Shown: positions 4,997 to 61,091, numbered from the stretch's first letter. The stretch is 64,000 nt of DNA from Chlorokybus atmophyticus (GCA_009103225.1 RHPI01001507.1:640025-704024), one strand, 5' to 3'. Translations and numbers: made by a program. Notes: generated by a model not told the origin, from the letters alone.

Positions 4997-7900
4997 ATGC
5001 GCAGGGTTGGTTCCTCCAGCACCACCGCCTCCTCCTCCATCTCCTCCTCCTCCTCCTCCTCCTCCTCCCGCTCCATCATATGGTCTCGTCGCCGCACCTT
5101 TGTCCTGGCCGCCCTCCTCTCCACCGCCCTCTTCTCCGCCTGCGTCACGGTCCGCCTCCAGCAGCAGAGCAGCACCGACGACGCCGACACCAAGGACCTG
5201 TTCCTGGCGGACCAGCTGAGGTCGGAGGCCAGGAGGCTCAGGGATGAGGTGGCGGAGGAGAGGAGGAGGAAGGAGGAGATGGTGAAGGAGGAGGAGGATG
5301 CAAGCAAGGAGAAGGAAGAGAGTGTCAATGACAGGAAGTCGACTAGCCAACAGCCTGAGGTGATTTTGGGAGTTTGTGCGTATGTGTGGCTGTGTACCTG
5401 AATTGAGGTTGTTGACAATGCAGTCGGCAGAACGTACACATTCGCATACACATAGTCAGGTTGTGCGTATGTTGTGTAAACGAACGATTGTGTGTACCTG
5501 TGTGTATGGTATGCCATATATATCCGTGATGTAGACTTACAGTAGCAATTGCGCACAATTCAGTGCATGTATTGCACACATTTTGTCAATGCGTGCATGT
5601 GCACGCACAACACTTATACATCGGTAGTTGTCAGACGTGTGCAACGACCGCGTGACACTTGCGTGTTTACTCACACGCTGAGCGCAGGCGCAGGCGCGTG
5701 TGACGAATGCAGAATGCACATGCTGCATACCATTGTGAAACTGGTTGGCTTCGTGTGTGCATGTGGGTACACACTTGCATGTGCACATGCCAGCGCATGC
5801 ACACAGACACAAAATGTGGGTGCGTGCATGCGCGCATGCACGAGCAGTCGCGCACACACTCATGTGCATGCCTGCTCATACGTGCGTGCGCGTATATGCT
5901 TTTGCTTGTGCGAGTATGTGCATGGGTACACATCATACTCCCAACCAACGTCCATTTACTAATAAACAGCTACACCCCACTCGCAGGTACCACCCGAACC
6001 TCCTCCACCCTCCTCTCCCCCTCCCTCACCCTCACCCTCACCCTCTCCCCCTCCACACTCCCCTCCCCCCCACCAGACACACCCAACCCAACAACAACAA
6101 ACCCACCCAAACCAACAAGGCGGTGGTTGGGGTGAGCTCGATGCCGAGGAGGAGGCGTTGTGGTCGCGCGTGTTGCCGCCCGCGCCCGCGTCGCTCACGG
6201 TCGTGTTCGGGTCGATTGCCATGCTGGACTTTATAACCAACTGGGTGAGGAGGAGAATGCATGGTTGTGTTGTGGTGGAGAAGAGAATGGTCGAGTACTT
6301 GTTGGGGTGGATGCTTTGCACGCATGTGCGTGCAAAGCATCCACGCGCGTGTGCAAGCGCATGTCTGTTTTCTGGCACACATACAGATTCGGCGTGCGTG
6401 TGCGTATGTGGATGCGCGTACACGCACACACACATGCACAGGCACTCTGAATCAGACACACGCATGCGCGCATACCCACGCGCATGCACACAGCGCCCCG
6501 CACTCAACACATATGCGCACACACGAACACATCAACCCACACCCACACCCTCTCAGGTCCTCCACGTCCAGCGCATCCCTGCCCTCCACGACTACGTGGT
6601 CATCACGATGGACGACGAGTTGTTGGCCCACTGCCGCCAGCGCGGCTTCCCTGCCATCCCCGCCATCAACGCCGAGATCATTGGACATATGGGGAAGGGT
6701 GGGAGTGTGGCGGGGAGCGATCTCAAGACGAACAAGAAGTATTACAGGACGGATCTCAACGCGTTCAAGAAGATGGGGGCGGTCAAGGCGGACTTCTTGA
6801 GGATGCTGCTGGTGAAGGTGAGGAGGGGGGTGGGTGGAAGTGTGGGCGTGGGTGTGTGGGTGTGGGTGTGCGAACGTGCGAGTGTGCGCATGTATGCGTG
6901 TGCATGTATCTTGAATGTGTGGTAGTACTGGAATTGTGTACATGTGCGCATACTTGCATGCACATGCGCGCGTGCGCGTGTACTGTCTGTAACGCATCGT
7001 GCTCATGCGCATATACACACGAACGCACGCACACACTCGCACACGGACGCACACACGCGCACGCATGCACACTGACCCCTCCCCTCCCCTCCCCTCTCAG
7101 GGCTACGACGTCCTCGTCTCCGATGCCGACACAGTCTGGTTTACAGACCCCTGGCCCCTCCTCGGCAAACACCCCAACACCAACACCAACAACAAGGACA
7201 ACCCCTCTCCCTCCCCAATCCGTCTCCCCGCCGCCCGCCTCTTTGCTGATGCGGATATATTAGTAACGAGTGATTGTATCGACGCCACGAAGGATATAGT
7301 CCCGGAGCTCGTGACGTGGGAGATCAACACGGGGGTGTTGTTCGTGCGTTCCACGCCGAGGAGCATCGAGTTCTGCGAGGAGTGGAGGGAAAGGGCGCTG
7401 AGTACCACGGATGGACACGATCAGTCAGAGTTCAATAGGATACTGAAAGGTGAGGGTTGTTGTTGTGGTTGTTGTGGTTGTTGTTGTTGACGATTACCCG
7501 CCACCACCACGACATTGAGAACTACAACAGCGACAACAACAGCGTGACAACAAGAACAGCAGCTTTGTGGGAGTGATATAACAATGAATCACACATGCAG
7601 GTGGTTACACGAAGGGCGTCCCGTGTAATGGAGCAAAGTGCCTGTCGCCGTTCTACGACTGGCCGTGAGTACACATGCGCACATCTTCATCATCACCACC
7701 AGTATTATTTTGTGTGTGTGCGTGTGCTTGCTCAAATGCGTGCCCACATTCAGGTATCTCCCCGTGGAGATCGCATCGAACGACGGCGTCGACCCGCTGT
7801 CTCCAAACGAGACGCTGCGCGCGAGCTACTACGTCGACCGGGGCGTGCGGTCGGCCCTCGTGGACCACATACACGCCAGCTTCGCGGTGCATCGGAAACA

Positions 7901-10045
7901 GGGCGTGCGGGAAGTGTTCTGGGCGTAAGCAGGAGTTGTGGTAGTAGTAGTAGTAGTGTCACACATGCACACACGCGCACATCTGTGTGCGCACGCATGC
8001 GTGCACACACACGCACACGCACATGCACACGCACAAGCACAAGCACAAGCAAGAGCACAAGCACACACACACACCTTCGTGCGCAGTTGGGGCGGCCGCG
8101 TGAAGGTTGGTATCCTCCCCCTAACCGAGTTCCTTGGCGGCCACACTTACTTCGTCCAACGCATCCCCTCCCGCTACTCCGTGTCCCCCATCAACGTGCA
8201 CGCCACGTACCAGTTCGGCGACACGCCCGAGTACATGTTCGGGAAGAGGCAGCGCATGAGGGAGCACGGGCTGTGGCTGTACGAAGATGACGAGTATTAT
8301 AGCCAGGGGGATTTCATGGAGGTGACGGGGATTGAGAGGGAGCTGGAAGAGGCGATGAATGCGACGGGGTATAGCCAGAGCGTGCGGTCGTGCTGGTGAG
8401 TTCGTGCGTGGGTGTGGGTGGGTGGGTGGGTGGGTGCGTGTGCGTGCGGGCGGGTGCAAGCGCGTGTGCGTGTGCGTGCATGGGCGTGAGCGTGCGTGCG
8501 AGTGTGTGCCATGTTTGTGCACGTGTGTTTGTGTCTGTTCAGTGTGTCTGCATGCATGCGTGCGCGTGTCTGCATGTGCATGCGTATGTGCACACCCACA
8601 CGCGTGCGTGTATAGGTGTATGTGCATGCGGACACATAGGCACGCACACGTTGTACGTGCGTGCGTGTGCACGTATGCTTGCATGCATGTCCGCCTGCCA
8701 CCCACCTCCACCCACTCTCCCCTCTCCTCTCGCCCAGGCCTGGTGAGCTCCCTTCCTCCTTCTCCCCGACCCTCGGTTGCTTCCACCCCTCCAGATTAGT
8801 TACCACAGTACCAAAAGACTCCCGCGCCAACCTCCGCTCCGCCGTCGACCCCGCCAAGCCCCACCTCGACGTGGTTCGCCGACTCAGACTCGTGCTGAGG
8901 AACGCCGTCACACTGGCGAGGACGCTGGGACGGGCGATCGTGTTGCCGCAGTTCTGGTGCGTCGCGGAGAGGCACTGGTGGATGCTCGAGGATGGGAGGG
9001 TGCCGGGGGGACAAGTGCAGCTACCGTAAGTGTGTGTGTGTGTGGCTGGAGAGGGCGACGTAGCGTGCTTATGCACTTATGCATGTGCGCGTGCACGCAG
9101 TTGTTCAGATACACGTGCACACGCATGCATTCAAGCACGTGCTTGCACACTAACGCACACACATACTGCACCCACACGCAACAACGACAACTCGCTGTAG
9201 GCAGCCTGACAACACTCCTTACAACCTGATCAACATCAACACGGAATATCATCTCCCATCTCTCCTCCAGGTTCGAGTGTCCGATGGACAACCTCGTCGA
9301 GCCCGCCTTATGGGTCAACCACATCGATTTCCGCCAGGCCAAGTTTCTATCCGACCCGCGCATCCCGGAATCGGTCTCCTCTTCCCGGTCGGTTCTGGAA
9401 CTGGTCCCGCGCGGCGAGCTCGGGTCCCGGGACATGGTGATTGAGAAAGATGTGATAAGAGTCCCGGCGGGGATCAGGTATGATGAGGCCAAGGAGATGT
9501 TGAGTAAAGAGGGCGTGAAGCGCACGCGCGTGTTGAGTATCAGTGCCACGGATGTGATGAAGTTCTCGTTGTGCGCGTTCAAGAATAGGAGCAGCGTGCG
9601 GTATGCCAATGAGGTCATCGAGACGGCCTTCAAACTACAGGTGAGAATGCGTCTGAATTCAACCTTGTAGGTGAACCATTTCACGCGCGCGCGTGCGTGT
9701 GTGTGTGTGTGTGTATGTACATGCACACGCGCGCGTGCGCGCCTGTATGCCTGCGCGGGTACACATGCGCGTGCATGCGTGCTCACATGCACGCTTGCAT
9801 GTGCGTTTGTACATATCATTGACTGCCTATATCCCAACCAGGTGAAGTACTGTTCCATCGAGCGCAACCAGTTCATCAAGGAGGTTGCCGACCAGGCCTT
9901 TGCTCGCGGCGAGGATCTCGGCGCGGCGTTCCGGCGCGAGTTCAACTGCACGGGAGAGGTCCACACGCAGCAACCCGTCGACCTCGGACCGCCCAAACTA
10001 CTCTATTGCGAGGAGGCGGACGGGTTGGGTGGGGTCTCGTCATGA
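4997..10045 (+). CDS. XEG113: GT77-family nucleotide-diphospho-sugar transferase, XEG113-like extensin arabinosyltransferase; 10 exons (4997-5359, 5987-6244, 6557-6817, 7101-7449, 7601-7664, 7754-7924, 8087-8395, 8738-9025, 9271-9640, 9842-10045)
   Basis: Type II membrane anchor (TFVLAALLSTALFSACVTV), DxD motif (VSDADTVW), DILVTSDC, EINTGVLFVRST, DQSEFN, GILPLTEFLGGHTYFVQ..NVHATYQF..GKRQRMRE, LRNAVTLARTLGRAIVLPQFWC and FECPMDN. The exons join in frame through GT-AG introns. Confidence 0.85.
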
Positions 10046-10979: not shown

Positions 10980-13900
10980 TCAATGCTCTCCCTCACCCTC
11001 CCATTTCCCTGTCACGCCCTCCTTGAGTCCCGTGAGCAACCCGCCCCACTCGCGCTCGTCGACCGCACCCTCGCCGTCGCCCGTCCACGGCTGGCTGAAG
11101 GGCACGGTACTCTTGACCTGAACGTGAAGTAAGTTGTAGTAATACTATAACACAAGGAGTGAGAGACATAACCAATGCACAATACAAACACGTGCTCTCA
11201 CACATACGCACTTGCGCACGAGCGTATATGCGCATCTGCGCATGCACATGCACAGACGCACACGCACACGCACAGACGCACATGCACACGCCCCCCCGTC
11301 CCAGACACACGCTCGCACACACACATGCATGCATGCACAGCAAGCCTATGACTATGACACACTACAACGCATGAGATAAGCACTGCAACTCACCTCAAAA
11401 GTCTTGTCGAGGGCTTCGGGTCGCTCGAGCAAAGCGATGCAGAGCTCGGCGATGTCGTCCCTTGAGACCTTGCCCTTGATGGTGTCACCCTGAACACACA
11501 ACCACAACATCAAGTAAACAGAGTGATACACATCTACCGATTCTGAGGTGATTACTGGGCTGAGTAGAAGCCGTGCATGTATGTACAGCAAGTGCACATG
11601 AACAGTAAGTGTGAGTTCACACAAGCACGATGTAAACACAAAGCTGACCTGGTCAACGACGAGAGGCATCCCGCGTGGCTCCTCGGTCAGCGCGCACGGC
11701 CGCACGATCGCGTAAGGGACACCACTCTCCCTTACCACGTCCTCGCCCTACATGGAGATTGGGTTGATGCGTTGCACCCACCCACCCACCCACCCAACCC
11801 CATGTCCTCACCTTGAGCTTGTAGGTGAGTATCCCCCCAAGCGCCTCATTCATCCTGACCGCGGGCGGCTCCTTCTCCGGGTCCACACCTGGCTTGCCTG
11901 GCCTCGTCACGCCCGCGGACGACACGTGAACCCACCTGCGAGAGGGGAGATGACCGGGTATGTGTGTGGGTGTGGGTGTTTGTGTGTGGGTGGGGTGGGG
12001 TGGGGTGGGGGGCGTGCCTTGGGGTGATTGGGGGTGTGAGGGCGGCGGTGATGGAAGAGATGGGGAGGGCGAAGCGGCCGGGAGTGAAGGAGGGGTTGAG
12101 GTCGCCATCGTACTCGAACTTGGACAACATCAGCTGTGCAGAAACACACAAGCGTGTAAGTCACGATTGTGTTGTTGTGCTGTGGTGTGTCGTGTCGTGT
12201 TGTGGCTCTCAACCCAACAAGGGAGAAGATGAGGCAAGTGTGTGTGCGTGCGCGTGCGTTACTACTTGCAGCTCAATGAGGGAGAAGATGCATGTGTATG
12301 CGCGTGTGTGCGTGCACGCGTGTCTGAAAAGTGTTCACTGACCTGCATGCAGACTATGTTGGATGTGTTGATGCGTGGGCCGTTGAGTGGGAGCGAGCGT
12401 GCTCGGAAGACGGCTTTGAACTCCTCGAACGGGAGGAAAATCTGACACAACACATACATCAACATCAACATCACCACCACCTCAAAGCAAAGGGTAACAT
12501 GGGAGTTGCATGCAACAAACACGCTCTTACTGTCTGCCACACGTCCTTTTGCGTGTCGAAAGAGCGGCAGTAAGACACGCCGTCCCAATTTGTGTCGCAT
12601 CTGATGATGAACTTGTACCTCATACCATCACCCTGTTTGTACCCACACAAATCAACAATATGACCACAAACAACATGACACAACAGGAACACAAACCAAC
12701 ATGCAACCCACCTTGACACGCAGCGCGATGCCGTCATAAGCCGACAGGTCCAACGCCGGTTCGTAATTCTTCGTGCGCACAGACGCAAACCCCCCTCTAT
12801 TCTCCGTCCTCACAACTCCCCCAAACACAGCCACACTTGTTGGTTTGTCCCCTCCCCCTTCCTTTTCCCCCTCATAATCCCTCACAACCCTGAGCGCACT
12901 CTCACTAACGCCACCCATCACAACATCATCCAGCGCACCCCACTCGGGCCCAACAACTTCATCATCATCAAAACCCAACAGCAGTTTGCCTCGCCTTTGA
13001 GGGAGAGACTCCCTCACAATGTTGGCCACATGCATCAACCCGTTCAGTTCCACCGTTTGAGGCGTGTCGCCCACTATAGTCGGGTCGTAGAACTTGATGC
13101 CTTGGTAGTATTTGGCTCTGTCGGCTGTGTCGCCCTCTTTAGGGCCCACTTTGACCGCTGTGCATGAGATGATTTTGGAGATGGAACGGATGTCGGAGCG
13201 AGGGAGGGTGAGGGGCTGGGTGATGTCGCCGGAGAGAAGCTTGAAATCGGGAGTGTCGGGACCCAACATCTTGCGGCCCTTTTCAGTGTCTCGCACCTGC
13301 AGGGAGAGAGCTCCTAATCTGTTTCTGTGTGTGTGTGTGCGTGCATATGTGTGCGTGTTTGTGTGAAAGGTATGTGTTATGCGCGCATATGCCTGTACAT
13401 TTCACTGTCTGTATGTTACAATGTGCAATGCAGACATGAAGAGTTGTGTGTAATTGCATGCACGTACAACTAATTTCCCAGTATATAAGAAACCACACGA
13501 CTGGCATGCTCGTGCATGTATATACATGTAAGCACACACACATGAATGCATGCATGCATGGCTGCTCTGACGAAGACTGCGACACCTTCACATGCAACTC
13601 GCACACAAGCACATGCAAGCTTGAGAGAAACGCAACGACGCGCTCAAGCACACACCAACGCTCGCCAAATCAGCACACACGCACACGTACACAAGTACAC
13701 ATACCTACACACGCACACATACATGTTCGCACCCGACAAACACATCACAAAGCACACGACGAACAAGCACCCATACACAAACATTATCTCTCACACAAAC
13801 GTTACAATTGAATATGTGTGTCAAACACCCACCAGCGCTTTGACTCTCCTCCCTCTCCTCCTCAGCCCCTCCACCACTCTCCTCCCCACTCCCCCCGTCG

Positions 13901-14276
13901 CTCCCGTCACGAGCACCCACTCCCCTCCTCCTCCTCCTCCTCCTCCTGCACCATCCCGCTTGGCCGCAGGGTCACCGCCCTGCATGAGCTCCGCCAGGGA
14001 GGAGAGGAGGCGCTGGGGGGAGGGAGGGGGGTTGAAGTAAGCGACGGTGCGGAGGAAACGGAAGGGGTCCCAGGAGGAAGAGGAGGAGGAGGAGGAGGAG
14101 GGGGAGGGGGAGGAGGGGGAAGAGCAGGTGGTGGTTGGGTGGTGGAGGTGGGGAGATTGTCTGCTGTGGGGGCGGCGGGGAGAGTGTGAGGAGAGGTGGT
14201 GGCGATGGCTGCCTGCGAGGAAGGAGGTGGATGCCACTGGCAGTAACGCCGCCACTGTCGCTGCCGCCGCCGCCAT
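10980..14276 (-). CDS. Plastid NAD(P)-binding Rossmann-fold protein with inserted CIA30 domain (At4g18810/HCF173-family); multi-exon
   Basis: Transit-peptide-like N-terminus, WDPFRFLRTVAYFN, VLVTGATGGVGRRVV, WGALDDVVMGGVSES, GGFASVRTKN, SKFEYDGDLNPSF, HVSSAGVTRP, YAIVRPCALTEEP, GDTIKGKVSRDDIA and FEVKSTVPFSQPW. The stop is at 10980-10982. Confidence 0.9.
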
Positions 14277-14479: not shown

Positions 14480-16060
14480 ATGCCCGGCATGGCGGCGACG
14501 GTGGCCGTGGCAGCGTCGGCGACGTCAGCAGCACCGTCGACACGACATCATCCACACTCCTGCGCGCCGCCGCTGTTGCCGCCACGTCTGCCGCTACTCC
14601 CTCACCACCGCCGCCACCATGGCCACCACCACCACCACCACCAGGCCGAGTCGACCACGCCACAGGCTACCGGGCCACAGGCTACCAGGCCAACAGCGGC
14701 GGCGACCAGGCCACGGGTTCCGACCATCACCAGCATGGCGTCATCGTCGGCGGCGTCCAGGGTGACCATCGCCATCCCAGGCGGCGGCATGTTGTTCTAC
14801 TGGCAGCTGGGCGCAGCCTCCGCTCTCGCTAGACGCTACGACTCCCTCTCCCTCTCCTCCTCCACCTCCTCCTCCTCCTCCTTGCCCACCTTATCCTGGG
14901 CTGGCGCCAGCGCCGGCGCCCTCGCCGCCGCTCTGGCCGCCGCCAGGGTCGACCCCCACCACGCCGCCGAGGAGGCCATCGCCCTGGCTAGGCGGGAGCG
15001 GTTGTGGCAACGAGGAGGAGGAGGAGGAGGAGGAGGAGGTGTGGGAGGAGCGGGGAAGCTAGCGCTCGTGTGGGGGAAGCTGGTGAGAGAGTGGCTGCAT
15101 GGGTTGCTGGATGAAAAGGCGGGAGAGAGGTGCAGAGGGAGAGTGAAGATCGCCGTGCTGGAGGTGGGTTGTGTTGTTTGTTTGGTGTATGTGTGCGTGC
15201 GTATACGTATATGCATGCGTGCATGCATGTGCACACACAACACATGCACATGTGGATATATGCCCGTGTCTGTCACGCACCTGTGCGCAGTCATGCACAT
15301 GCGTGTGCATGTCTGCGCACACTTGCACTCGTGGGCATCCCCCTCTCGGTCACACGCGTGCACACACCCACATGCGCGTGCACATACACCTGCCTCAACC
15401 CACTCACTCGCATTCTTATGTGCATATTGTGGCATCTTGTGTGCGTTCGTACCCATGCAGTCTGCATGCACGCATGTCACACACATGCATCCGCATCCTG
15501 ATCGTGTGTACATCTCTCCCCAGCTCGGTTGGCCCTGGCTCTGGCGCATCCGTCGCCGCCACGTCTCCGACTTCGCCTCCACCCCCGACCTCATCGAGTG
15601 CCTCATGGCCTCCGTACACATACCCGTATTCCTGGACGGAAGACTCTTCCATACACTCTCGCGACCAACAACACAAGAACAACACCATCACCAACAACCC
15701 CCTCCCTCTTCCACCCTCCGCTGCATCGATGGCTCCATGTTCCTCTCCCACCGCTCCGCTCTCTTCACCTCCAACGCATCCCCACCCTCCACCACCCACC
15801 CCGACACACCCACCTACATCTTCCTCGACTACAAGGACGACCCCGACGCCTCCCTCGAGGCCGGCAAGTTCCTGACGCTCGGGCGGGACGAGGACGCCAC
15901 CAGGGAGTGGATCGATAGGATGATGGGGATGGGGGAACGGCATGTGGCGGGGATGTGGGAGAGGGGGGAGATGAGGGAGTTGGGGGTGGGGCCGCACCCA
16001 CCTACTACTCAGGTTGGGGGGGGTGAGGTTAGGGAAGACGAGCGGTCTCTGGTGCTGTGA
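14480..16060 (+). CDS. Patatin-like phospholipase; 2 exons (14480-15163, 15524-16060); true start may be a downstream ATG
   Basis: Gly-rich GGGMLFYWQLG, nucleophile motif GASAG, CLMASVHIPVFLDG and DG motif (CIDGSMF). The 360-nt GT-AG intron is microsatellite-rich. Confidence 0.85.
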   Translation: MPGMAATVAVAASATSAAPSTRHHPHSCAPPLLPPRLPLLPHHRRHHGHHHHHHQAESTTPQATGPQATRPTAAATRPRVPTITSMASSSAASRVTIAIPGGGMLFYWQLGAASALARRYDSLSLSSSTSSSSSLPTLSWAGASAGALAAALAAARVDPHHAAEEAIALARRERLWQRGGGGGGGGGVGGAGKLALVWGKLVREWLHGLLDEKAGERCRGRVKIAVLEVGCVVCLVYVCVRIRICMRACMCTHNTCTCGYMPVSVTHLCAVMHMRVHVCAHLHSWASPSRSHACTHPHARAHTPASTHSLAFLCAYCGILCAFVPMQSACTHVTHMHPHPDRVYISPQLGWPWLWRIRRRHVSDFASTPDLIECLMASVHIPVFLDGRLFHTLSRPTTQEQHHHQQPPPSSTLRCIDGSMFLSHRSALFTSNASPPSTTHPDTPTYIFLDYKDDPDASLEAGKFLTLGRDEDATREWIDRMMGMGERHVAGMWERGEMRELGVGPHPPTTQVGGGEVREDERSLVL

Positions 16061-16643: not shown

Positions 16644-18517
16644 TCACAGCGTGTCGCGCGCGGATTCCCACGCCAACGGTGCCGGCTTCACCCACTGCGT
16701 CTGCTGCGTCACCTGTGAGAAAAGGGAGCCCCATCAACGTCAGGAGCAGAGTGACAATGAACTAAGTGCAATGCACATGACGGGCTGGTTTGAAAGCACA
16801 TTATTACATGGACAAATGGCTAGGTAAGAGTTTGAGAAACACACAGACTTGCCTCGTTGTAATAGTATGGAGTCTCATCAGTGTCGCTCTTGTGCTCGCG
16901 CCAGGCAGCCTCCTCGGGCTGGTACACAATTGATGAGAAATGAATGTAGTAATGACAGGAGAGATACATGCACACAGACGCAAGTACGCGTGCACACGTG
17001 CGCAGACACTGATGTGCACACAAGCATGTGTGCATGGACACGCGTACGTGTGTACGCCCATGCCCACGCCCACGCCCACACACACCTGCGTCCACACCGA
17101 CTCCTTTGTCTTCGGGTTATACCACCACTTCCTTCCCTCCCCGTCGACCCCCTCCCTCCAGGTCGCCTCCCGCGGGTCGTCGCGGCGCGTCTCGCCCGTC
17201 GCCGCGTTGTAGAAGTAGGAGTCGTGGGAGATAGAGTGAGATGCATCATCGACATCGTCAGGAAGCTCCGCGGGGACGTCGTGTGTGCTCGCCTTCGTGA
17301 GGTAGTTGAACCTACAAGGGTGTGGGTGGGTGGGTGGGTGGGTGTTTGTGAGCCACACGCATACACATACCCACATTTGTACCCACGAGCGCGCGCGCGC
17401 ATGCGGGTGGGTGAGTGAGTATGTGACGTGAGCGTGTGTCGAGTTTACCAGTATGTGCCAGAGCCGTCCTTGGCTTGCACACGCTTCCACGCGAGGGCCT
17501 TCGGGACCGAGTACTTCACTTGGCCCGTGAGAGAGTTCACGTACACCTTCCCGCCACCCTGCGCATCCTGCACGACACACACATTACTGTCAGAGTCACT
17601 CTGACCCCCATTCCCCCCTCCCATACACACACTTACCCTCATCGTCCACGAGCAACTCGGCGGCCTCCCCCACCTCGTCTCTCCCGTCCCCGTGTTATGA
17701 TAAAACTCCCCGTCTCCGTGCTTGTGAACCTTCCAACTGCCGGGCTCCTCCTCGAAGGCTTCGGCACCGTCCGCACGCTCGGCATCCAGTAAAGAAGTGA
17801 TGGTGGGGTTGTTGATGTGGTTGGCCAAGGTACGGGCGGTGTGGCCGGCATGGTCGGGGACGTCCTGGGGTGGGGTGTGGGTAAGTGGGTGAGTGGGTGG
17901 GTAGGTGGGTGGGTGGGTAGGTGGGGGTGGGGTGCATGTGTGGGCTTACGGGGTTGGCGCCGTGGGCGAGGAGGATGCGGACGATGTCGGCGTGGTTGGT
18001 GGAGACGGCGGCGGTGAGGGGGGTGCTGCCGTCATCGGCGGCAATGGACACCTGCATGTGAATATACATGCGTGTGTGTCATGCATGCAATGGGAGCACT
18101 GGAAAAGCAAGAAGTGAGGTGTGTGTATGTGTGTCACTTTACCTTGGCGTTGTGCTCCAGGAGGGTGGACACCACCTCCTTGTTGCCCCGCTCTGCAGCA
18201 TAGTACAGAGCAGTTCGCCCACTCGCATCACGCTGCATGACAACCAACATGACGTAGTAAACGCATTACAACATACACATGTAACAACTTTCGCTGCATG
18301 CAAGAGACATTGAATGACATACACACAAGCACACAGTCATGCAACACAAACACACACTCACTTGGTTGGGGTCTTGGCCTGCCTGGAGCGCGTCAAAGAC
18401 GTTGCCGGGGTCGTTGCGTTTGGCCAGGAGGGGCAGGGGGGTGGGTTCCAAGGAGGCGGCTACCGGAGCAGAGACGGACACCGCCAATAAGGCGACCGCC
18501 AACCACACCGCCGCCAT
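16644..18517 (-). CDS. Signal peptide + ~3 ankyrin repeats + ~6 tandem WW-like repeats, C-terminal RDTL; 8 exons
   Basis: MAAVWLAVALLAVSVSAPVAA signal peptide. Ankyrin repeats: GRTALYYAAERGNKEVVSTLLEHNA and GSTPLTAAVSTNHADIVRILLAHGANP. WW-like repeats: FYHNTGTGETRWGRP, YVNSLTGQVKYSVP, YWFNYLTKASTHDVP, YFYNAATGETRRDDP, WWYNPKTKESVWTQP, YYYNEVTQQTQWVKP. Confidence 0.8.
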
Positions 18518-22531: not shown

Positions 22532-25057
22532 ATGCGCTGGCAGTTGCTGGTGCTGCTGCTGGCGACTGCATTCCAGCTGGCAACAGCGCAAACAACAGCT
22601 GACTACTCCACAGCGCTCTCCAATGTGACGTTCATGCACCCGCGTGCAACCGTCACACCAGACATGGTGCCTGGTAAGCCATAGCACAGCACTGTTGTAT
22701 GCAGGGTAACAGTCGAGCAACCTCTGGTCACTCCTGTACTTGTGCGTGCACGCGTGTACATGCGTCTGTGTGACTGACTCCTGCTGCATTGTCACACAGT
22801 GATTCGCTCGAACTACAATTCCAAAAGCAGTTTGTGGCCGCTCTACTTAAGGGGCATGAAGTCTGCCAACAACACTATTCATACACCTCGCAATCCAACT
22901 GGCAGGTGAGCAAGCTCATGACGCAGTCTCGCAATCGTGCTGCTCAACAACTAGTTGCTATCGCCAGCCACGATGACTGACCTCTGTCCTAGTTACATTC
23001 CCCGCAACTTTGCGGACCGCATTGGAAGCGTCGCTGGTGGGTACTTGGTGGACTCTGACCCTGACAGGTTGGCATACGCGCTCGACGACCTGATGTACAT
23101 CTCTTCACTGCCTGCCTGGTGAGCTGCTCGTCAAGCGAGTGAGTGACTCATCACCAATAGCGATGTTTTGAATGAGCAGGGGCGCAAGCTTTAACAAGGT
23201 TGAGAGCTACCTGGACCCGAGCAATTACCTGCTGGCGGCTTCTTGGGGATATGACTGGCTGTACAGCAACTTGGCAAGTCAGCAGCGCACGACCGTGTGG
23301 AATGCGGTGCTCAACAACGCCTTCCTTCCCGCCCTGAACGCGTCCATGCTGCCCTAGCTCGCAGCCCTGGTGCGTGCTGCTTGCCACTGCATGTGCACAC
23401 ATGCGTTGCTGAGATGAAACAAGACATCTGACATACCCGTGGTGGTGGCGTGCTACGCAGAACACAAATGTCGGCGTCAACTCGCTCACGGGCTACGTTG
23501 TAGCGAGCATAATGTTTGCAGAAAAGGACATGATCATGTGCCAGCAGATACTGGCCATGGCACTGCCGGGCATTGACTTGCAGCTGCGCAATCTTGGCCC
23601 GAGCGGTGCTTTCTTCGAGGGCAAAATGTATGCCAGCTACATCGGGTACAACCTGCCTTTCGCCCTCAGCACTCTCAAGACTGGTCTCAACAACGACTTC
23701 GGCTGGAGCACCTCACCCGCGCTGTTGGTAAAGACAAGATGGTCTGTACTGTGCGCTTCCCTACATGCACAGCTACTTATTGCTACAATCATGTGCCGCT
23801 GCGTACTTCCGCATTCAGTGCTTGAGCCCCGACGGCAAGGCCACATGGTTCGGCTTTGCAGACGCTGGCACAAACGATGACGTCAACTCGATGCAACTGA
23901 GCTACTATGCTGCGGCCCGAGTGAACAACACCTTCGTGCCCTCGTACAAGAACAACCTCGGGCAAACGGGCTTGTTCTTCCCCGTATTCATCACAAACCC
24001 CGCCATATTATTTTTTTTTTACAAAACGGCGCCGCCAAACCCACTACCTGTGGATGTGCGCCACCTCGGGTTTGCAGCAGCCACCGCGTTCATGCGCACG
24101 ACATGGAACAGCAAACCGTACCGCGTATGTTGCCGTGAAGGCTGGGTGAACCCTGCTCCACTGGAGAGCACGCATGCGCATCTTGACTTGGGGTCGTTTG
24201 TTTTTGAGAACGACGGCCAGCGCTGGTTCATTGACCTTGGCGCTGACAACTACAGCCTGCCACATTATTTCACACCTCCAGCGACCAAGGGATCGCGTCG
24301 TTACAGGTGGAAGACACACCGCAACTTGCATATTGGCTGTAGAGTGGTGTATTTGCTGCCATACTCACACGATCACTCCTTCTTCCACAGTTACTACCGC
24401 CCGCGCACGGAGTCGCACAACACGCTGGCGGTGAGCAACATGACGCAGAGCGAACTGCTGTGTGAGAACCAGGCGCTGGGCATGGAGGCGACACTGACGG
24501 TGCCATACTCCACCTCAAACCGCTCGCACACCATTGTCAACCTCACGTCGGCATACAACGGCGCCATCAATGTCAGCCGCGGCATCGCACTCCTGAAAGA
24601 CGTACCTTTTCCATATACGAGACTTCTTGTGCAAGACGAGGTGAGCATCCACACGACACAGCATGCAAACTCTACAAGGAGGCGTATGTCGCTGACACCT
24701 GTTTGCCTGCACACAGGTGTCCTTTGTGACTTCCATGGATGTCATAAGCATGTTCCACACCCGCGCCAACGTCACCGTGTCAAATGGCACAGACGTCACC
24801 CTGACACAGGGGGGTTCGCAGCTGCAGGGACGGATTCTTAGCCCCAGCAACTCGTACTTCACAACCTTTTCTACGGACCCCGGCACGGTCAACAACAGCA
24901 CGCAGGAATACAACAACGCCGGTGTCACGAACCTAGTTGTACGCGATGGCACTCCTCACCCCCAATGCCACAATCGCAGTTCTCTGGGCAAAGAGCCTGG
25001 CGGATGCGCCAATGCGTCAGGCATGCTGACGTACAGCCGCTGTCCGCCTGGCAGTAG
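22532..25057 (+). pseudogene. Secreted heparinase II/III-like polysaccharide lyase, copy A (probably disrupted)
   Basis: Signal peptide MRWQLLVLLLATAFQLATA, ASWGYDWLY, YPWWWR, FFEGKMY, FGFADAG, HAHLDLGSFVFENDGQRWFIDLGADNYSLPHYF and YYRPRTESHNTL. Lesions relative to copy B: a lost acceptor (catgt[acag]gccgct), a compensated frameshift pair over AYVAVKAG and a C-terminal frameshift. Confidence 0.75.
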
Positions 25058-28484: not shown

Positions 28485-28561
28485 NNNNNNNNNNNNNNNN
28501 NNNNNNNNNNNNNNNNNNNNNNNNNNNNNNNNNNNNNNNNNNNNNNNNNNNNNNNNNNNNN
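28485..28561. other. Assembly gap (77 N)
   Basis: Run of N. Confidence 1.
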
Positions 28562-28854: not shown

Positions 28855-31490
28855 CTAGCTCGGGTCGACTTTGGTGTCGAGCGGCTTCCAAGTGAGCTCC
28901 ATTGGCCCATCTCTTAGCCACTACACGACACATGAAGATGAGCACACTGCACATGTGGGTATGCTGATATCATGTTATCAACATGCACAGCCACTTACCT
29001 TTGTAGCCGTGAACTTGGTCCCTTTCACCACCGGACATCCCGCATGCATGCTCTTCTCATCCATCTACACAACAGCATGTACAACACCCATTGCGCCTCC
29101 GCTTCAGCAGTCAAATTCAAACCGTACCGAATTCAACAACCACACATACCACACCATAACGACACAACTCGTAGTACGTACCTCTCCTGTGAGCGTCCTA
29201 CTCCAAAACAACACCGCATCCCCTGCCTTCGGCCTCAACGACACCCCCTACACCAATAAGTGACCACCACCACAACATCAGCATTATCATCATCAACAAA
29301 AGCAACAGCAACACCAACGACAACGGCAACACCACCGACAAAACCTTTTGAGGCTCCTCCCCGCACGTGGCATTAGCATACGGGCTTCCCGGTATAGGTG
29401 TCGCTAGCGGGAAGTGGGTCTCTCCTCCAGCCTCCACATCATTGAGATACTACACACACATGAGGGGGATGTGTTGATGCTGAAGCACACATATGTATTC
29501 ACATCTTACTTACGATGAGTACTGTGGCGACGCGCTGCTGGCCGGGCGAGCCAGGGTGGTCGCCTCTACCCTCTGGAGGCATCGGCTTGAACCAGTCGCA
29601 GTGGGCGTAGTAGTGCTCGCCCAACTCGTAACGCAACACCTGTGGACATACACAGGATGTGAGCGAGTGAGCTAGAGTGATTCAGCTATGCTCGCGCACG
29701 CACACATGCACGTATGTGTATACGAGCGTCTGTGTGTGCGTGCGTGCGCGCACACAGATAGATAAACGCAGATGCATGCAGACGCACACACATACAACAA
29801 AAACGACAACAATAAGAACAAAATGATGCGCGCGCGCGCCCGCGTATGTGCGTGTGTGTGCAACCTCCAGACACACATGCACACAAACGTAGTCATGTGC
29901 ACGCCGCACACATCTGTGCGGACAAGTTCACCTACCCACCCACCCACATCATTCCAACCCACCCACCTGCATGGCTTCTCCATTCTCCGGCGGCACCATC
30001 GCCACCCACCCCACCCTCTCATCCACGGTCTTCACCACCGGATCTCCATTCAACTCCTCTCCCATGAACATCCCCCAGCTCGTCCTGATCGGGTCCACGG
30101 CCTCCTTGCCCGTGTCGTGCTCCATGACGTGGGAGCGTTCGAGGCGCGGGGTGGCGAGGGAGACGAGGTAGGAGGACTCGACGGGGTGGAGGAGACCGCG
30201 GACGGCGTAGGCGCGGGGGGACCAGGAGAGGAGGTCGAGGGTGATCTGGGCACGCCAGAGGGACTCGGGGACTGCGCGGAGATGTGGGTGGGTGGGGGTT
30301 ATGGGTTACGCGCACATACCCACACGCACGCGTCCGCGAGCACGCGCGCGTGTGCGCGTACACGCACGCAGGTGCGCATGCGTGTATGGGTGGGTAGGTG
30401 TATATATGGATGCGTGGACGTATGTGCATGAGTGCGTGTATGCGTACGTGTGTATGTGTGTGGGTTGATGCCATGCGTGCGTTGACAATGTGCGAGCGTG
30501 TGTGCATCGACAAGATATGTGCGCGCACGCGCATGTACGTGTCAACATGATACACTAACAAATGAGCAGCACACTGAGCAGCCATCGCACGCACACACCC
30601 ACTCCTCCCTCCTCCAACCAAACTCACCGCACGGTATCCCGCACGCCTTCCTGCAGTTCACCCGCATGTAACCCGGGTTGCGCTCGCACTCCCCCGCCGC
30701 AGCCCACGCGGGACACTTGGCGTGCCTGTCCCGGCACTCTTCCGCGGACTCGCCCAAACGCTCCCAATCAATACTGTTGTTGTTGTTGTTGTCGTCGGTT
30801 TGGGTTATGAGGGAACGGCGTTGAGTTGTGATGTCGTCTTCGGGCTTGTTGTTGAGTTTGATGTTGTTGTTGACGTTATTGTTGTCTTTGTTGTTGTTGT
30901 TGTTGTTGTTGTTGGCCTTGATGTTTGTGTTTGTGTTTGAGGTCTCTGTATTGGTGCTTGTTTTGGTGGTGTATGTGGAAAGCTTGTGTTCGAGGTCGAG
31001 CAGGTGCTGGGATTGGGCCTTCACGCTGCCCGCAAGGTCCTGAAGATGGGCCGATATTTATGTATGATTTCGTGTGGATGTGTGCGCGTGCCTGTGTGTG
31101 AGTGTGCGTGGGTGTGTGCATATGGGTGCGGGCCTGCGTACGCGTGCAGATACAGTGGTCGTGTCGAGACACGTTACTTAGCAACAGTACCTCAAAGTGC
31201 TTCAGAAGCGCAGCGCTGGTGGCGGAATCCGCGCTCACACCTGTGTGTATGTGACAATTTGACCAAAAACATATTGCGTTCGAGAAAATAAGGTTTGAAC
31301 ACTCACACACATGCACACACGCACACGTCCACATACATAAACACACGCTCACATACACACCCCCATCCCACACCCACCCACCCTGCCTTGCCCTTACCCT
31401 CCAGCAGCTGTTTAATCCCCTCCCCGACCCTCCCCAACGCCGCGTGATCCAACTCCTCAAGCGCCTCAAGCTTGCTCAACAGCACACCGC

Positions 31491-39901: not shown

Positions 39902-40607
39902 NNNNNNNNNNNNNNNNNNNNNNNNNNNNNNNNNNNNNNNNNNNNNNNNNNNNNNNNNNNNNNNNNNNNNNNNNNNNNNNNNNNNNNNNNNNNNNNNNNN
40001 NNNNNNNNNNNNNNNNNNNNNNNNNNNNNNNNNNNNNNNNNNNNNNNNNNNNNNNNNNNNNNNNNNNNNNNNNNNNNNNNNNNNNNNNNNNNNNNNNNNN
40101 NNNNNNNNNNNNNNNNNNNNNNNNNNNNNNNNNNNNNNNNNNNNNNNNNNNNNNNNNNNNNNNNNNNNNNNNNNNNNNNNNNNNNNNNNNNNNNNNNNNN
40201 NNNNNNNNNNNNNNNNNNNNNNNNNNNNNNNNNNNNNNNNNNNNNNNNNNNNNNNNNNNNNNNNNNNNNNNNNNNNNNNNNNNNNNNNNNNNNNNNNNNN
40301 NNNNNNNNNNNNNNNNNNNNNNNNNNNNNNNNNNNNNNNNNNNNNNNNNNNNNNNNNNNNNNNNNNNNNNNNNNNNNNNNNNNNNNNNNNNNNNNNNNNN
40401 NNNNNNNNNNNNNNNNNNNNNNNNNNNNNNNNNNNNNNNNNNNNNNNNNNNNNNNNNNNNNNNNNNNNNNNNNNNNNNNNNNNNNNNNNNNNNNNNNNNN
40501 NNNNNNNNNNNNNNNNNNNNNNNNNNNNNNNNNNNNNNNNNNNNNNNNNNNNNNNNNNNNNNNNNNNNNNNNNNNNNNNNNNNNNNNNNNNNNNNNNNNN
40601 NNNNNNN

Positions 40608-41163: not shown

Positions 41164-43672
41164 CTACTGCCAGGCGGATAGCGGCTGTACGTCAGGCATT
41201 GGCGCATCCGCCAGGCTCTTCGACCAGAGAACTGCGATTGTGGCATTGGGGGTGAGGAGTGGCATGCGTACAACCAGGTTGGTGACACCGGCGTTGTTGT
41301 TTTCCTGCGTGCTGTTGTTGATCGTGCCGGGGCTTGTAGAGAAGGTGGTGAAGTATGCGTCGCTGGGGCTGAGAATTCGTCCCTGCAGCTGCGATCCCCC
41401 TTGTGTAAGGGTGACGTCTGTGCCATTTGACACGGTGACGTTGGCGCGGGTGTGGAACATGCTTATGACATCCATGGAAGTCACAAAGGACACCTGTGCG
41501 CAGGCAAACAGGTGTCAGCGACATACGTCTCCTTGTAGAGTTTGCATGCTGTGTCGTGCGGATGCTCACCTCGTCTTGCACAAGAAGTCTCGCGTATGGA
41601 AAAGGTACGTCTTTCAGGAGTGCGATGCCGCGGCTGACGTTGATGGCGCCGCTGTATGCCGCCGTGAGGTTGACAATGGTGTGTGAGCGATCTGAGGTGG
41701 AGTATGGCACCGTCAGTGTCGCATCCACGCCCAGCGCCTGGTTTGCACACAGCAGTTCGCTCTGCCTTACGTTGCTCACCGCCAGCGTGTTGTGCGACTC
41801 CGTGCGCAGGCGGTAGTAACTGTGGAAGGAGTGAACGTTGAAGTATGGCAGCAGATACACCACTCTAGAGCCAATATGCAAGTTGCGGTGTGTCTCTCAC
41901 CTGTAACGACGCGATCCCTTGCTAGCTGGAGGTGTGAAGTAATTTGGCAGGCTGTAGTTGTCAGCGCCAAGGTCAATGAACCAGCGCTGGCCGTTGTTCT
42001 CAAAAACAAACGACCCCAAGTCAAGATGCGCATGCGTGCTCTCCAGTGGAGCAGGGTTCCACCCGGCCTTCACGGCAACATACGCGGTACGGTTGCTGTT
42101 CCATGTCGTGCGCATGAACGCGGTGGCTGCTTCAAACCCGAGGTGGCGCACATCCACGGGTAGTGGGTTTGGCGGCGCCATTTTGTTAAATATGGCCGGG
42201 TTTGTCCAGAATACGGGGAAGAACAAGCCCGTTTGCCCGAGGTTGTTCTTGTACGAGGGCACGAAGGTGTTGTTCACTTGGGCCGCAGCATAGTAGCTCA
42301 GTTGCATCGAGTTGACGTCATCGTTTGTGCCAGTGTCTGCAAAGCCGAACGATGTGCCTTGCCGTCGGGGCTCAAGCACTGAATGCGGAAGTACACAGCG
42401 GCCTGTACATGGTTGGATCAATAAGCAGCTGTGCATGTGGGGAAGCGCAAAGCATAGACCATCTTGTCCTTACCAACAGCGCGGGTGAGGTGCTCCAGCC
42501 GAAGTCGTTGTTGAGACCGGTCTTCAGAGTGCTGAGGGCGAAAGGCAGGTTGTACCCGATGTAGCTGGCATACATCGGGCCCTCGAAGAAAGCACCGCTC
42601 GGGCCAAGATTGCGCAGTTGCAAGTCAATCCCCGGCAGTGCCATGGCCAGTATCTGCTGGCACATGATCATGTCGTTTTGTGCAAACACTATGCTCGCTA
42701 CAACGTAGCCCGTGAGCGAGTTGACGTCGACGTTTGTGTTCTGCATGGCACGTTACGTTACCACAACGTGTATGTCAGTTATCTTGTTGCATCTCAGCAA
42801 CTTGAGCAGCAATGTATGCATGTGTGCACATGCAGTGGCAGCAGCGCGCACCAGGGCTGCGAGCTTGGGCAGCATGGACGCGTTCAGGGCGGGAAGGAAG
42901 GCGTTGTTGAGCACCGCATTGCACAGCCAGTCATATCCCCAAGAAGCCGCCAGCAGGTAGTTGCTCAGGTCCAGGTAGCTCTCAACCTTGTTAAAACTTG
43001 CGCCCCTACTCATTCAAAACATCGCTATTGGTGATGAGTCACTCACTCGCTTGCACTGCATGCATAGTCGCATGCTTAACCAGCAGCTCACCAGGCAGGC
43101 AGTGAAGAGATGTATATCAGGTCGAGCGCGTATGCCAACTTGTCAGGGTCAGAGTCCACCAAGTACCCACCAGCGACGCTTCCAGTACGGTCCGCAAAGG
43201 TGGGGAATGTAACTAGGACAGAGGTCAGTTATCATGGCTGGCAATAGCAACCAGTTGTTGAGCAGCATGATTGCGAGACTGCGTCATGACCTTGCTCACC
43301 TGCCAGTTGGATTGCGAGGCGTATAAATAGTATCGTTGAGAAACTTCATGCCCCTTAAGTAGAGCGGCCACAAACTGCTTCTGGGATTGTAGTTCGAGCG
43401 AATCACTATGTGGCAACGCAGCAGGAGTCAGTCACATAGACACATGTACACGCGTGCACGCAGTCGCGCAGGAGTGACCAGGTTGCTCGACTACTTGCCC
43501 CATATACAACAGTGCTGTGCTATGGCTTACCAGGCAGCATGTCTGGTGTGACGGTTGCACGCGGGTGCGTGAAGGTCACGTCGGATAGCGCTGTTGAGTA
43601 GTCAGCTGTTGTTTGCGCTGTTGCCAGCTGGAACGCAGACGCCAGCAGCAGCACCAGCAACTGCCAGCGCAT
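41164..43672 (-). pseudogene. Secreted heparinase II/III-like lyase, copy B (disrupted)
   Basis: Same exons as copy A: MRWQLLVLLLASAFQ, FFEGPMY, AYVAVKAGWNPAPLESTHAHLDLGSFVFENN, YYRLRTESHNTL, DVQPLSAWQ*. Lesions: a taacg duplication with a stop in the WWW motif, loss of the SNLASQQRTTVW segment and a frameshift at GKATW. Confidence 0.8.
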
Positions 43673-59666: not shown

Positions 59667-61091
59667 CTATCCCCTTCCCTGTCCCTGTGTGTTTCTACTA
59701 CTCCCCCTCCCACTCCCCATCCCAATGGGTATCTCCCTCTGCTCCCACCTCAGACACATCCACTCTCCGAGCAGGGCCATGACGGCGATGGAGGCGGCGT
59801 TGACGGCCCACCAGAGCGCGCTGGCGGGGAGGGAAGAGGAGTAGGCGGAGGTGAGGACGAGGTGGAGGAGGTGGGAGGTGAAGGAGAAGTCGAGACACTT
59901 CTTGGCGCGGAGGACGATGAAGAGGAGGGAGAAGGAACTGTGTGTGGGGGGAGGGGGGAGGGGGGTTAGTGGGTGGGTGTGGGTATGGGTGGGGGGGGGG
60001 GTGGGGGTGGGGGTGTGCGTGGGGGTGTGTGCGTGGGTGTGCGTGGGTGTGTGCGTGACGGTGTTTCTCCAACACCCACGTACGCACGCACCAAACGCAT
60101 TGCAGAATTAATGTACCGACAGACCAAAGCATATCCCGGGTTCAACTCATGGGTAACCCGCCCGCGCACACTCCCTCTCACTCCAACAACAACAACAACC
60201 CACACTCACCCCAGTGCCGCATTGATCACAAACGCGAGCGTGGTGATCCATCCCTGTAAGCTTCGCGTGTCGAGCGCGCGCCAGTCGAGCAGCAGCGCCA
60301 GCGGGATGAGCGTGATGTTGGTCGATGCGTCGCGGGCGTGGATGGGTGCGAGGAAGAGGAGGAGGAGGAGGCCCAGGGAGAGGTACTGGATGGCCTGAGA
60401 GAGAGAGGGGAGGGGGTGGGTATGCGTGCACACGCTGGGCGCGTGGTAGTGTGCACACGCGTAAACGCATTTGCGTGTGCACGTGCTTGTGCGTGTGCAA
60501 GTGCTTGTGTGTGCATGCGCATGCATGCGCGTATAGATGCATGTGCGTGCGCATGCGCGCATCTCTGAGTACGTGTGCACGTGCACAAACACATGCATGT
60601 CTGTGCGCATGTGTGCATCAGTTTGTGCGCGTGTATGCGTGTGTGCGCGTCTGTGTTGGTCGCGCATGTGCGTGCGAGATCATGTGTGCGTGCTTGGGCA
60701 GGCACGCATTTGTGCGTGCCCGTGTTGCACAGTTGTTTTACGAAGGGCCAATGCAGTGCGCCATGTGGCAGCTGATGATATGCATGTCGCGCATGTGACC
60801 CATCAGTGTCTTGCTAGGTCACTATCACACTATGGCGGCCGTTGGCAAATGCAATTACGAAGCACTATACCTTTGACTCGATTGCACTTCATGCATCATG
60901 CGCTGACCACACATGTGTGTTTGGACACGTCAAGTAGCTGAAGCAAGCATGCAGCGCAAAGCCACAAAGTGTTTCATTAATTCGACTCATTGAGTGCAGT
61001 ACTATACAATATGACAGTGCAATAACACCTGAAGAAGGGCGATTTGGGCCACGATGAGGACAGGATCCCAGACTTGCGTCCCGTAAAACAT
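59667..61091 (-). CDS. SYS1: SYS1 Golgi integral membrane protein; 3 exons
   Basis: MFYGTQVWDPVLIVAQIALLQ / AIQYLSLG..LDWRALDTRSLQGW / IVLRAKKCLDFSFTSHLLHL..WWAVN..VMALLGEWMCLRWEQRDIP. Confidence 0.92.

Follow-up and report, generated by a model that had tools for sequence, protein, structure and literature searches.

Can the position of a codon within its exon govern how that codon is written? The question is raised by a multi-exon glycosyltransferase gene, GT77, which lies on the plus strand at 5.0-10.0 kb of a 64-kb stretch of Chlorokybus atmophyticus DNA (GCA_009103225.1, RHPI01001507.1:640025-704024). This stretch, in which all positions below are counted and to which all our results pertain, is hereafter called the window. 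An earlier note on it had proposed that the exons of this and other genes are polarised from C-rich to G-rich in phase with the splice sites, synonymous codon choice included. We confirm here that this C-to-G polarity is real and very strong within the window, and we discuss which process might have produced it.

Exon polarity extends to silent sites and codon choice

The wave is apparent in the raw skew profile, before any gene model is applied. In 100-nucleotide (nt) windows over GT77, the GC skew lies around -0.5 at acceptors and at +0.5 to +0.7 at donors, in phase with the splice sites, and its spread across the whole window is twice that of shuffled sequence (standard deviation 0.28 vs 0.14). 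The wave stands out at 1-20 kb, 29-33 kb and 55-64 kb; between 20 and 29 kb and between 33 and 55 kb it is weak. Two assembly gaps (N runs at 28485-28561 and 39902-40607) both fall in the wave-weak part of the window.

Exons were modelled with a finder of our own that scores codons by log-odds, applies splice-site matrices and chains exons only where their frames agree; it was trained on the window itself and is blind to position in the exon. We retained 33 high-confidence exons and used 25 trusted internal exons for the silent-site tests, all exon models and splice sites being predicted ones. Pfam was queried with single exons, joined spliced models serving as a check of frame continuity only, and it backed frame and strand in 12 of the 20 exons queried (CIA30, Patatin, ShK, WW (twice), PIN_4, Nucleotid_trans (twice), Glyco_transf_5 (twice), a group-1 glycosyltransferase domain, and SYS1).

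The skew of the last third of an exon exceeds that of its first third by +0.55 on average, with a positive difference in 26 of the 33 exons (Wilcoxon p = 7e-6). By this comparison of thirds, every exon that the earlier note had named turned out to be polarised, namely four of GT77 (6557-6817, 7101-7449, 8087-8395 and 8738-9025), both patatin exons, 29967-30271, 55521-55820 and the SYS1 exon at 59714-59937. The polarity is strongest at four-fold degenerate sites, followed by codon position 3 and then by positions 1 and 2. From the first to the last fifth of the 25 internal exons, the share of C at four-fold sites falls from 0.64 to 0.19 and that of G rises from 0.13 to 0.63, the skew of the successive fifths being -0.67, -0.66, -0.33, +0.28 and +0.54. 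When codons were permuted within exon and codon family, the observed polarity corresponded to z = 11.8 and was reached by none of 5000 permutations, with 23 of 24 exons in agreement, which upholds the claim that synonymous codon choice itself is polarised. The four-fold-site z amounts to 7.9 in GT77 alone, 8.7 in the other genes, 6.7 when only Pfam-supported exons are used, and 10.6 after removal of low-complexity residues.

Codon counts show directly that codon use is constrained by exon position, as had also been proposed. TCC occurs 94 times in exon heads and 5 times in exon tails, CGC/AGG pass from 35/3 to 8/50, GGC/GGG from 29/4 to 18/51, and GTC/GTG from 30/12 to 18/67. Among two-fold codons, the C share of the NNY type decreases from 87% in heads to 56% in tails, and the G share of the NNR type increases from 67% to 82%. 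The codon sets at the two ends are thus opposite, with TCC, CTC, CGC and GGC in heads versus GAG, GGG, AGG and GTG in tails. All three codon positions follow the gradient, and so does the amino-acid content, heads being rich in His, Pro, Ser, Thr and Asn, and tails in Met, Glu, Gly, Trp, Val, Lys and Arg.

It may be asked whether such a pattern could arise by chance or from the exon models, given that the finder was trained on the same window, that the junctions are predicted, and that antisense alternatives score high for some exons. This explanation has to contend with the lack of any position-in-exon term, with the persistence of the signal in the Pfam-supported subset, and with the visibility of the wave in raw skew. 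The same pipeline, furthermore, finds nothing in the heparinase-like genes of the window or in ten foreign starch-synthase exons. We consider an artefact close to excluded.

Zones around splice sites mirror one another

As the earlier note had it, the polarity is locked to the splice sites, the zones being centred on acceptors and donors. The acceptor zone is C-rich and G-poor from about -60 to +150, and comprises an intron tail made of C+A (~60 nt) and an exon head made of C+U (~150 nt). The donor zone, G-rich and C-poor, extends from about -120 to +90, with an exon tail made of G+A (~120 nt) and an intron head made of G+U (~60-90 nt). At exon silent sites the skew stays level at -0.65 to -0.85 over 150 nt, exon plateaus in general being 120-150 nt long, and the intron skew decays within ~60-90 nt. 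The flip from one sign to the other is found at a mean of 0.53 of exon length and scales with that length (slope 0.42, r = 0.65, p = 4.5e-4). The sign of the skew alternates inside each exon and each intron. Exons of 445-585 nt are polarised over their full length, a span that exceeds the usual range of enhancer motifs.

The zones are also related at the level of oligomers. The 3-mers of exon heads correlate with the reverse complement of those of exon tails at r = 0.94 (0.80 beyond base composition), and those of intron heads with the reverse complement of those of intron tails at r = 0.88 (0.90 beyond base composition). Residual correlations across types reach only 0.17-0.25, and the spectra of exon heads and exon tails compared directly give r = -0.17. 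By virtue of this mirror symmetry, every exon and every intron is a compositional palindrome, the exon and intron alphabets being different. In almost every exon, CCTC, CTCC and TCCT are nearly confined to the head, and GAGG, GGAG and AGGA to the tail, with a 6-7-fold enrichment of purine-rich, enhancer-like 4-mers in tails and a 6-8-fold enrichment of CCTC-type 4-mers in heads. Intron heads are rich in TGTG, GTGT and GGGT, intron tails in CACA, ACAC and ACCC, and alternating purine-pyrimidine octamers number 8-10 per 100 nt at intron ends versus 0.3-0.6 in exons. The last 30 nt of all trusted introns contain 45% C and 22% T, a C-rich tract replacing the U-rich polypyrimidine tract, and the donor consensus is G|GTGAGTG.

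One argument made earlier does not survive this symmetry. The polarity had been taken as RNA-level or transcription-linked because, on either strand, it goes with the orientation of the genes; a C-to-G gradient is identical after reverse complementation and therefore has the same look on either strand, which makes the argument invalid. The minus-strand exon 29967-30271, for instance, also passes from C-rich to G-rich when read on the plus strand. Read in antisense, polarised exons are nearly free of stops (open over a mean 0.93 of exon length, and fully so in 15 of 25 exons) and also score as coding (e.g., at 6557-9640), some exons having high-scoring antisense alternatives, so that gene finders can choose the wrong strand. 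The strand is not settled between 13833-14208 (-) and 13866-14141 (+).

The segregation of enriched motifs between heads and tails of nearly all exons is what might be expected of a protein-read code, in which GGAG, GAGG and AGGA in exon tails would recruit SR-type proteins to the donor, and CCUC, CUCC and UCCU together with C-runs near the acceptor would recruit C/U-binding proteins, taking the role of a U-rich polypyrimidine tract; any RNA pairing would then be incidental. The low T content of intron ends makes a non-standard reader of the 3' end plausible, exons gain no folding stability (see below), and splice-linked skews of codons and amino acids are of a known kind (Wu et al. 2013, PMC3787667). 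Yet known enhancer skews are local and take much the same form at either end of an exon. Here, head and tail are opposed (the direct r of -0.17) and the zones extend over exons as long as 585 nt. Nor is there any reason why two independently read motifs should mirror each other as reverse complements at the oligomer level, which they do well beyond composition, and silent sites of all kinds avoid the complementary base, which resembles a composition rule and not a motif rule. We regard a protein-read code as unlikely on balance.

Reverse-complement symmetry is typical of DNA-structure signals, and one may thus also picture the purine/pyrimidine tracts of exons, the alternating sequence of introns and G-quadruplex (G4) motifs as shaping chromatin, polymerase speed or R-loops, with splicing following suit. 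The abundance of alternating octamers at intron ends would be in line with such a DNA-level signal, as would the window's canonical G4 motifs (plus strand, 16; minus strand, 17), which by eye are mostly placed near splice sites. Their clustering was judged without a null, however, and the period of the wave tracks the lengths of exons and introns (64-627 nt) instead of a fixed chromatin repeat, and we hold this explanation to be very improbable. By eye, the G4 motifs cluster just past donors or within exon tails where they are on the sense strand, and within intron tails or exon heads where they are on the template strand (e.g., 6844-6866, 8410-8434 and 15949-15977 on the plus strand, and, as C-runs on the plus strand with genes on the minus strand, 17057-17077, 31360-31383 and 59703-59723).

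The wave accompanies long introns

Zones had been claimed around every acceptor and every donor. This stands for exons beside long introns; it fails for exons shorter than ~130 nt, in which polarity was looked for and is absent, for two of the four first exons, and for exon ends beside introns of less than 130 nt. Head and tail skews are -0.28 and +0.25 beside introns of at least 200 nt, versus +0.02 and -0.02 beside introns of less than 130 nt (p = 0.014 and 0.033), and the effect is seen within some genes, for example at the tail of exon 12712-13296, beside a 79-nt intron. As exon zones stand beside long introns and not beside short ones, the wave appears tied to the splicing of long introns.

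The heparinase-like copies A (22955-25053, +; exons up to 534 nt, introns ~80 nt) and B (41164-43013, -), the latter an inverted duplicate of the former, are without the wave. They show no polarity at four-fold sites (z = -0.3) and no zones around their splice sites, in keeping with what the earlier note had remarked of them. Both have introns of ~80 nt and a lower GC content at third codon positions, and both are placed between strongly polarised genes. This juxtaposition of polarised and unpolarised genes speaks against a bias of the region as a whole. No polarity was seen in ten starch-synthase exons of three other genomes, and the loci matched by the starch-synthase exon, which were low-GC and plant-like apart from one contig with 56% GC, are without the wave; none was recognisable as Mesostigma or another Chlorokybus.

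Predicted folding and a proposed pairing of splice sites

Zones of the same type are predicted to pair best. Pairing energies between 60-mers are -35 kcal/mol for exon heads with exon tails and -34 kcal/mol for intron heads with intron tails, versus -14 to -31 kcal/mol for mismatched types. Folded in isolation, exons are predicted to close end to end: 64% of their pairs bridge the midpoint, versus 31% in shuffles (p = 1e-6); exon 29967-30271, for instance, adopts an end-to-end fold with z = -1.39. Introns are predicted to be more stable than their mononucleotide shuffles (mean z = -4.4, 14 introns), and in the GT77 intron 6818-7100 the head pairs with the tail at a minimum free energy (MFE) of -147.6 kcal/mol (z = -5.54 against dinucleotide shuffles). 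An intron of the GT77 paralogue reaches z = -1.5 only. Around acceptors, between -45 and +100, predicted local folding in 60-nt windows reaches its minimum strength (-7 to -9 kcal/mol, versus -17 kcal/mol in intron interiors). In the predicted fold of the GT77 pre-mRNA, 70-80% of the pairs remain within one exon or one intron, and the splice sites sit at low points of the structure (p = 0.011).

The reading that we tentatively favour, and to which we give somewhat less than an even chance, is that selection has zoned the composition of the RNA, with the splice sites of long introns as anchors. It builds on the zoning itself and its reach into silent sites, on the dependence on intron length, the reverse-complement symmetry and the predicted folds, and it would have selection maintain the zones, RNA pairing or accessibility being the selected property. 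The RNA around the acceptor and the branch region would be unable to form local structure, while any G zone could pair with any C zone, in any register. Through such generic pairing introns would fold back on themselves and bring their 5' and 3' splice sites together. Exon zones might pair inside the exon, or across an intron as an outer extension of the intron stem; two alphabets, purine/pyrimidine in exons and GU/CA in introns, would favour exon-exon and intron-intron pairing, and like pairing with like would hold both splice sites opposite each other. The C zone and the G zone of an exon meet near its middle, with the consequence that codon choice flips there and amino-acid content drifts along. 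In favour of this zoning, exon plateaus combined with a faster decay in introns are not obviously given by a neutral process that depends on distance only, and the complementary base is avoided even at two-fold codons.

Selection and mutation as possible causes of the wave

Several observations weigh against a selected zoning. Pairing is equal between cognate and non-cognate partners, whether within the same exon, within the same intron or across an intron (p = 0.4-0.9), and the sizes of head and tail, compared in search of balanced hairpin arms, are uncorrelated within exons or across introns. Exons are not more stable than their shuffles (median z ~0), and exon 8738-9025, which alone forms a single end-to-end hairpin (MFE -103.7 kcal/mol), is even less stable than them (z = +1.95). 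All structures are computational predictions, half of the four first exons are unpolarised, and the effect of intron length is partly confounded with gene identity. To these points must be added a paralogue of GT77 that is disrupted and yet keeps the wave. This inverted partial copy (777-2776, -), whose exons are ~90% identical to the intact gene, is probably a pseudogene, as its sequence carries a 2-nt deletion, other indels and a premature stop. Compared at 1.2-2.9 kb, its introns have diverged in sequence and still possess GT-rich heads and CA-rich tails, and the wave in it is as good as in the intact copy (57 vs 67 differing sites), as might be expected if the cause were mutational or if the paralogue were still transcribed.

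Two narrower ideas were discarded: partner-specific pairing, since exon heads favour their own tails no more than those of other exons, and an extra stability of exon hairpins, by comparison with shuffles. As to the structure-based or protein-read code suggested in the earlier note, the folds point both ways, isolated exons being predicted to fold end to end with neither added stability nor a preference of heads for their own tails. In a more far-reaching version of the zoning, the splice units of long-intron genes in this lineage would follow a two-alphabet, reverse-complement-symmetric code (pyrimidine to purine in exons, GU to CA in introns) that folds exons and introns back, or zips donor to acceptor zones in register. 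Such a code would replace much of protein-based exon and intron definition and would dictate codons as well as an oscillation in amino-acid content along proteins, in step with their exons; we see it as a possibility, and a decidedly tentative one.

The persistence of the wave in a diverged and disrupted paralogue, together with the absence of partner specificity, keeps alive a neutral explanation, namely a strand-asymmetric process of mutation or repair, coupled to splicing, R-loops or chromatin, whose sign would be set by the nearest splice site and to which microsatellite-like slippage seeded by the splice consensus might add. That the effect is greatest at the least constrained sites, that paralogous introns kept their composition while diverging, that pairing is generic, and that the low-complexity CCT/GAG and GT/CA runs look slippage-prone would all be consistent with it. 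On the other hand, the known transcription-linked asymmetries are one-signed and strand-specific, whereas the wave alternates and is reverse-complement symmetric, and we know of no mechanism that would switch the sign of the skew at mid-exon. The plateau at exon silent sites over 150 nt also contrasts with the rapid decay in unconstrained introns, the signal survives the removal of low-complexity residues, and spliced genes only 10-20 kb away are without the wave. We rate a mutational origin as improbable.

Relation to known systems

Parmley, Hurst and colleagues have reportedly described splice-related skews of codons and amino acids in mammals. Exon-end skews of the type associated with exonic splicing enhancers (ESE) are modest and confined to the neighbourhood of the junctions. 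In Wu et al. (2013, Genome Biol Evol, PMC3787667), ESE-type preferences differ little between the 5' and 3' ends of exons, purines being favoured at both. The wave resembles such skews in that codon and amino-acid usage vary with distance to the exon-intron junction, in that it is stronger where introns are larger, and in its purine-rich 3' exon ends. It differs from them in having opposite ends (C/U vs G/A), with C at four-fold sites falling from 64% to 19%, and in that its zones fill whole exons and flip at mid-exon.

Touchon and colleagues in 2004 and Green and colleagues in 2003 are said to have found strand asymmetries coupled to transcription or splicing, which are strand-specific and of one sign along the transcript, and Ginno and colleagues in 2013 reportedly found an R-loop-prone GC skew at gene ends (promoters and terminators). 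The wave shares with all of these that GC and AT skews are tied to transcription units and splice signals. Unlike in those, its sign alternates with each exon and intron, and it is reverse-complement symmetric.

Teleost introns of the (AC)m-(GT)n type provide another point of comparison. According to Lin et al. (2016, Genome Res, PMC4691745), a predicted stem juxtaposes their splice sites, the repeats are found together on the two sides of introns but not of exons, and splicing of this kind is independent of U2AF2 while relying on the repeats to pair the right splice sites. As in those introns, complementary simple sequence occupies opposite intron ends here (GT heads and CA tails, r = 0.88) with a predicted end-to-end fold, and a U-rich polypyrimidine tract would be weak or unnecessary, judging here from base composition (45% C, 22% T). 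In contrast to those introns, complementarity here enters the coding sequence and recurs across exons (-35 vs -34 kcal/mol for introns) in a second alphabet, GA/CU, and takes the form of composition zones, not of dinucleotide repeats alone. A similar likeness exists with the intron-internal complementary boxes of 1995 work, as cited in Lin et al. (2016), in which intramolecular pairing of the intron helps to pair splice sites; those boxes are specific and belong to single introns, whereas the zones found here are generic, occur in many genes and reach into exons.

In the available parts of the Chlorokybus genome paper and its supplements, no description of the wave was found, skew going unmentioned and introns appearing only in a legend on length, nor did we find one in the wider literature searched. 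The idea that the wave had already been described for Cyanophora was dropped, as the 2019 genome paper mentions neither skew nor hairpin. The C-to-G wave of exons is thus apparently undescribed so far.

Should selection maintain the wave, it would represent the strongest case known to us of splicing-linked pressure on silent sites, in which codon usage would be set by exon position more than by translation and gene architecture would bend the composition of proteins (towards His, Pro, Ser and Thr at exon starts, and Gly, Glu, Met and Trp at exon ends). RNA-structure-assisted pairing of splice sites, if it holds true here, would be extended from fish introns to an alga of the plant lineage and to coding sequence. 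If the cause is mutational, the wave would reveal a hitherto unknown mutation process phased by splice sites. Codon-usage tables, tests of silent-site selection, gene finders and phylogenetic composition models for this genome must allow for it.

The GT77 gene and other exons of the window

The first GT77 exon with its 5' leader (5005-5359, +, the 5' end of the transcript being approximate) has its ATG at 5080 and flips near 5204, its skew by thirds running from -0.58 to +0.64. Its leader and head are (CCT)n-rich, with 45 CCTC-type motifs, and its tail is (GAG/AGG)n-rich, with 38 GAGG-type motifs; head and tail are exact reverse-complement repeats inside a single exon. Exon 2 (5987-6244, +), whose frame is continuous with the later exons, possesses an extremely C-rich head (skew -0.93, versus +0.20 in the tail; flip near 6116). 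In exon 3 (6557-6817, +; flip near 6673), the skew goes from -0.23 to +0.33, with a weak Pfam match to Nucleotid_trans and a possible alternative donor at 6847. The intron that follows (6818-7100, +) has a G/GT-rich head and a C/CA-rich tail with a predicted end-to-end fold.

Exon 4 (7101-7449, +; skew -0.49 to +0.31, flip near 7241) carries the stronger Nucleotid_trans match (E = 4e-20), in which 115 residues face 87 profile positions. The ~28 extra residues correspond to a Pro/Ser/Thr/Asn-rich stretch (7170-7250, +) encoded by the C-rich head of the exon, which suggests that composition pressure or an expansion on the acceptor side adds low-complexity protein at exon starts. Exon 5 (7601-7664, +; 64 nt), between short introns of 151 and 89 nt, is unpolarised, and exon 6 (7754-7924, +; 171 nt), also flanked by short introns, shows a weak polarity (-0.0, -0.2, 0.0 and +0.2 in 40-nt bins). 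A CA-rich intron tail is found at 7982-8021. The last three exons are polarised, exon 7 (8087-8395, +) from -0.27 to +0.53 with a flip near 8228, exon 8 (8738-9025, +) from -0.47 to +0.34 with a flip near 8891, and exon 9 (9271-9640, +) with a flip near 9386.

Beyond GT77, the CIA30-domain exon (12712-13296, -; 585 nt, Pfam CIA30 E = 1e-17) is polarised throughout, its G-richness fading toward the 79-nt downstream intron. The patatin gene contributes an exon with a Pfam Patatin match (14645-15163, +; 519 nt, skew -0.05 to +0.66, flip near 14968) and a second one without a Pfam match of its own (15524-16056, +; 533 nt), which is C-rich over ~330 nt and then G-rich, with skew bins of -0.5 to -0.9 followed by +0.4 to +0.8. 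The exon 29967-30271 (-), of a gene labelled P4H by the earlier note, runs from -0.45 to +0.57 with a flip near 30129, and Pfam detects an ShK domain in its neighbour 30595-31039. The starch-synthase (GBSS-like) exon 55521-55820 (+; Pfam Glyco_transf_5, E = 4e-17) passes from -0.45 to +0.53, and the SYS1 exon 59714-59937 (-; Pfam SYS1, E = 3e-25) from -0.67 to +0.39.

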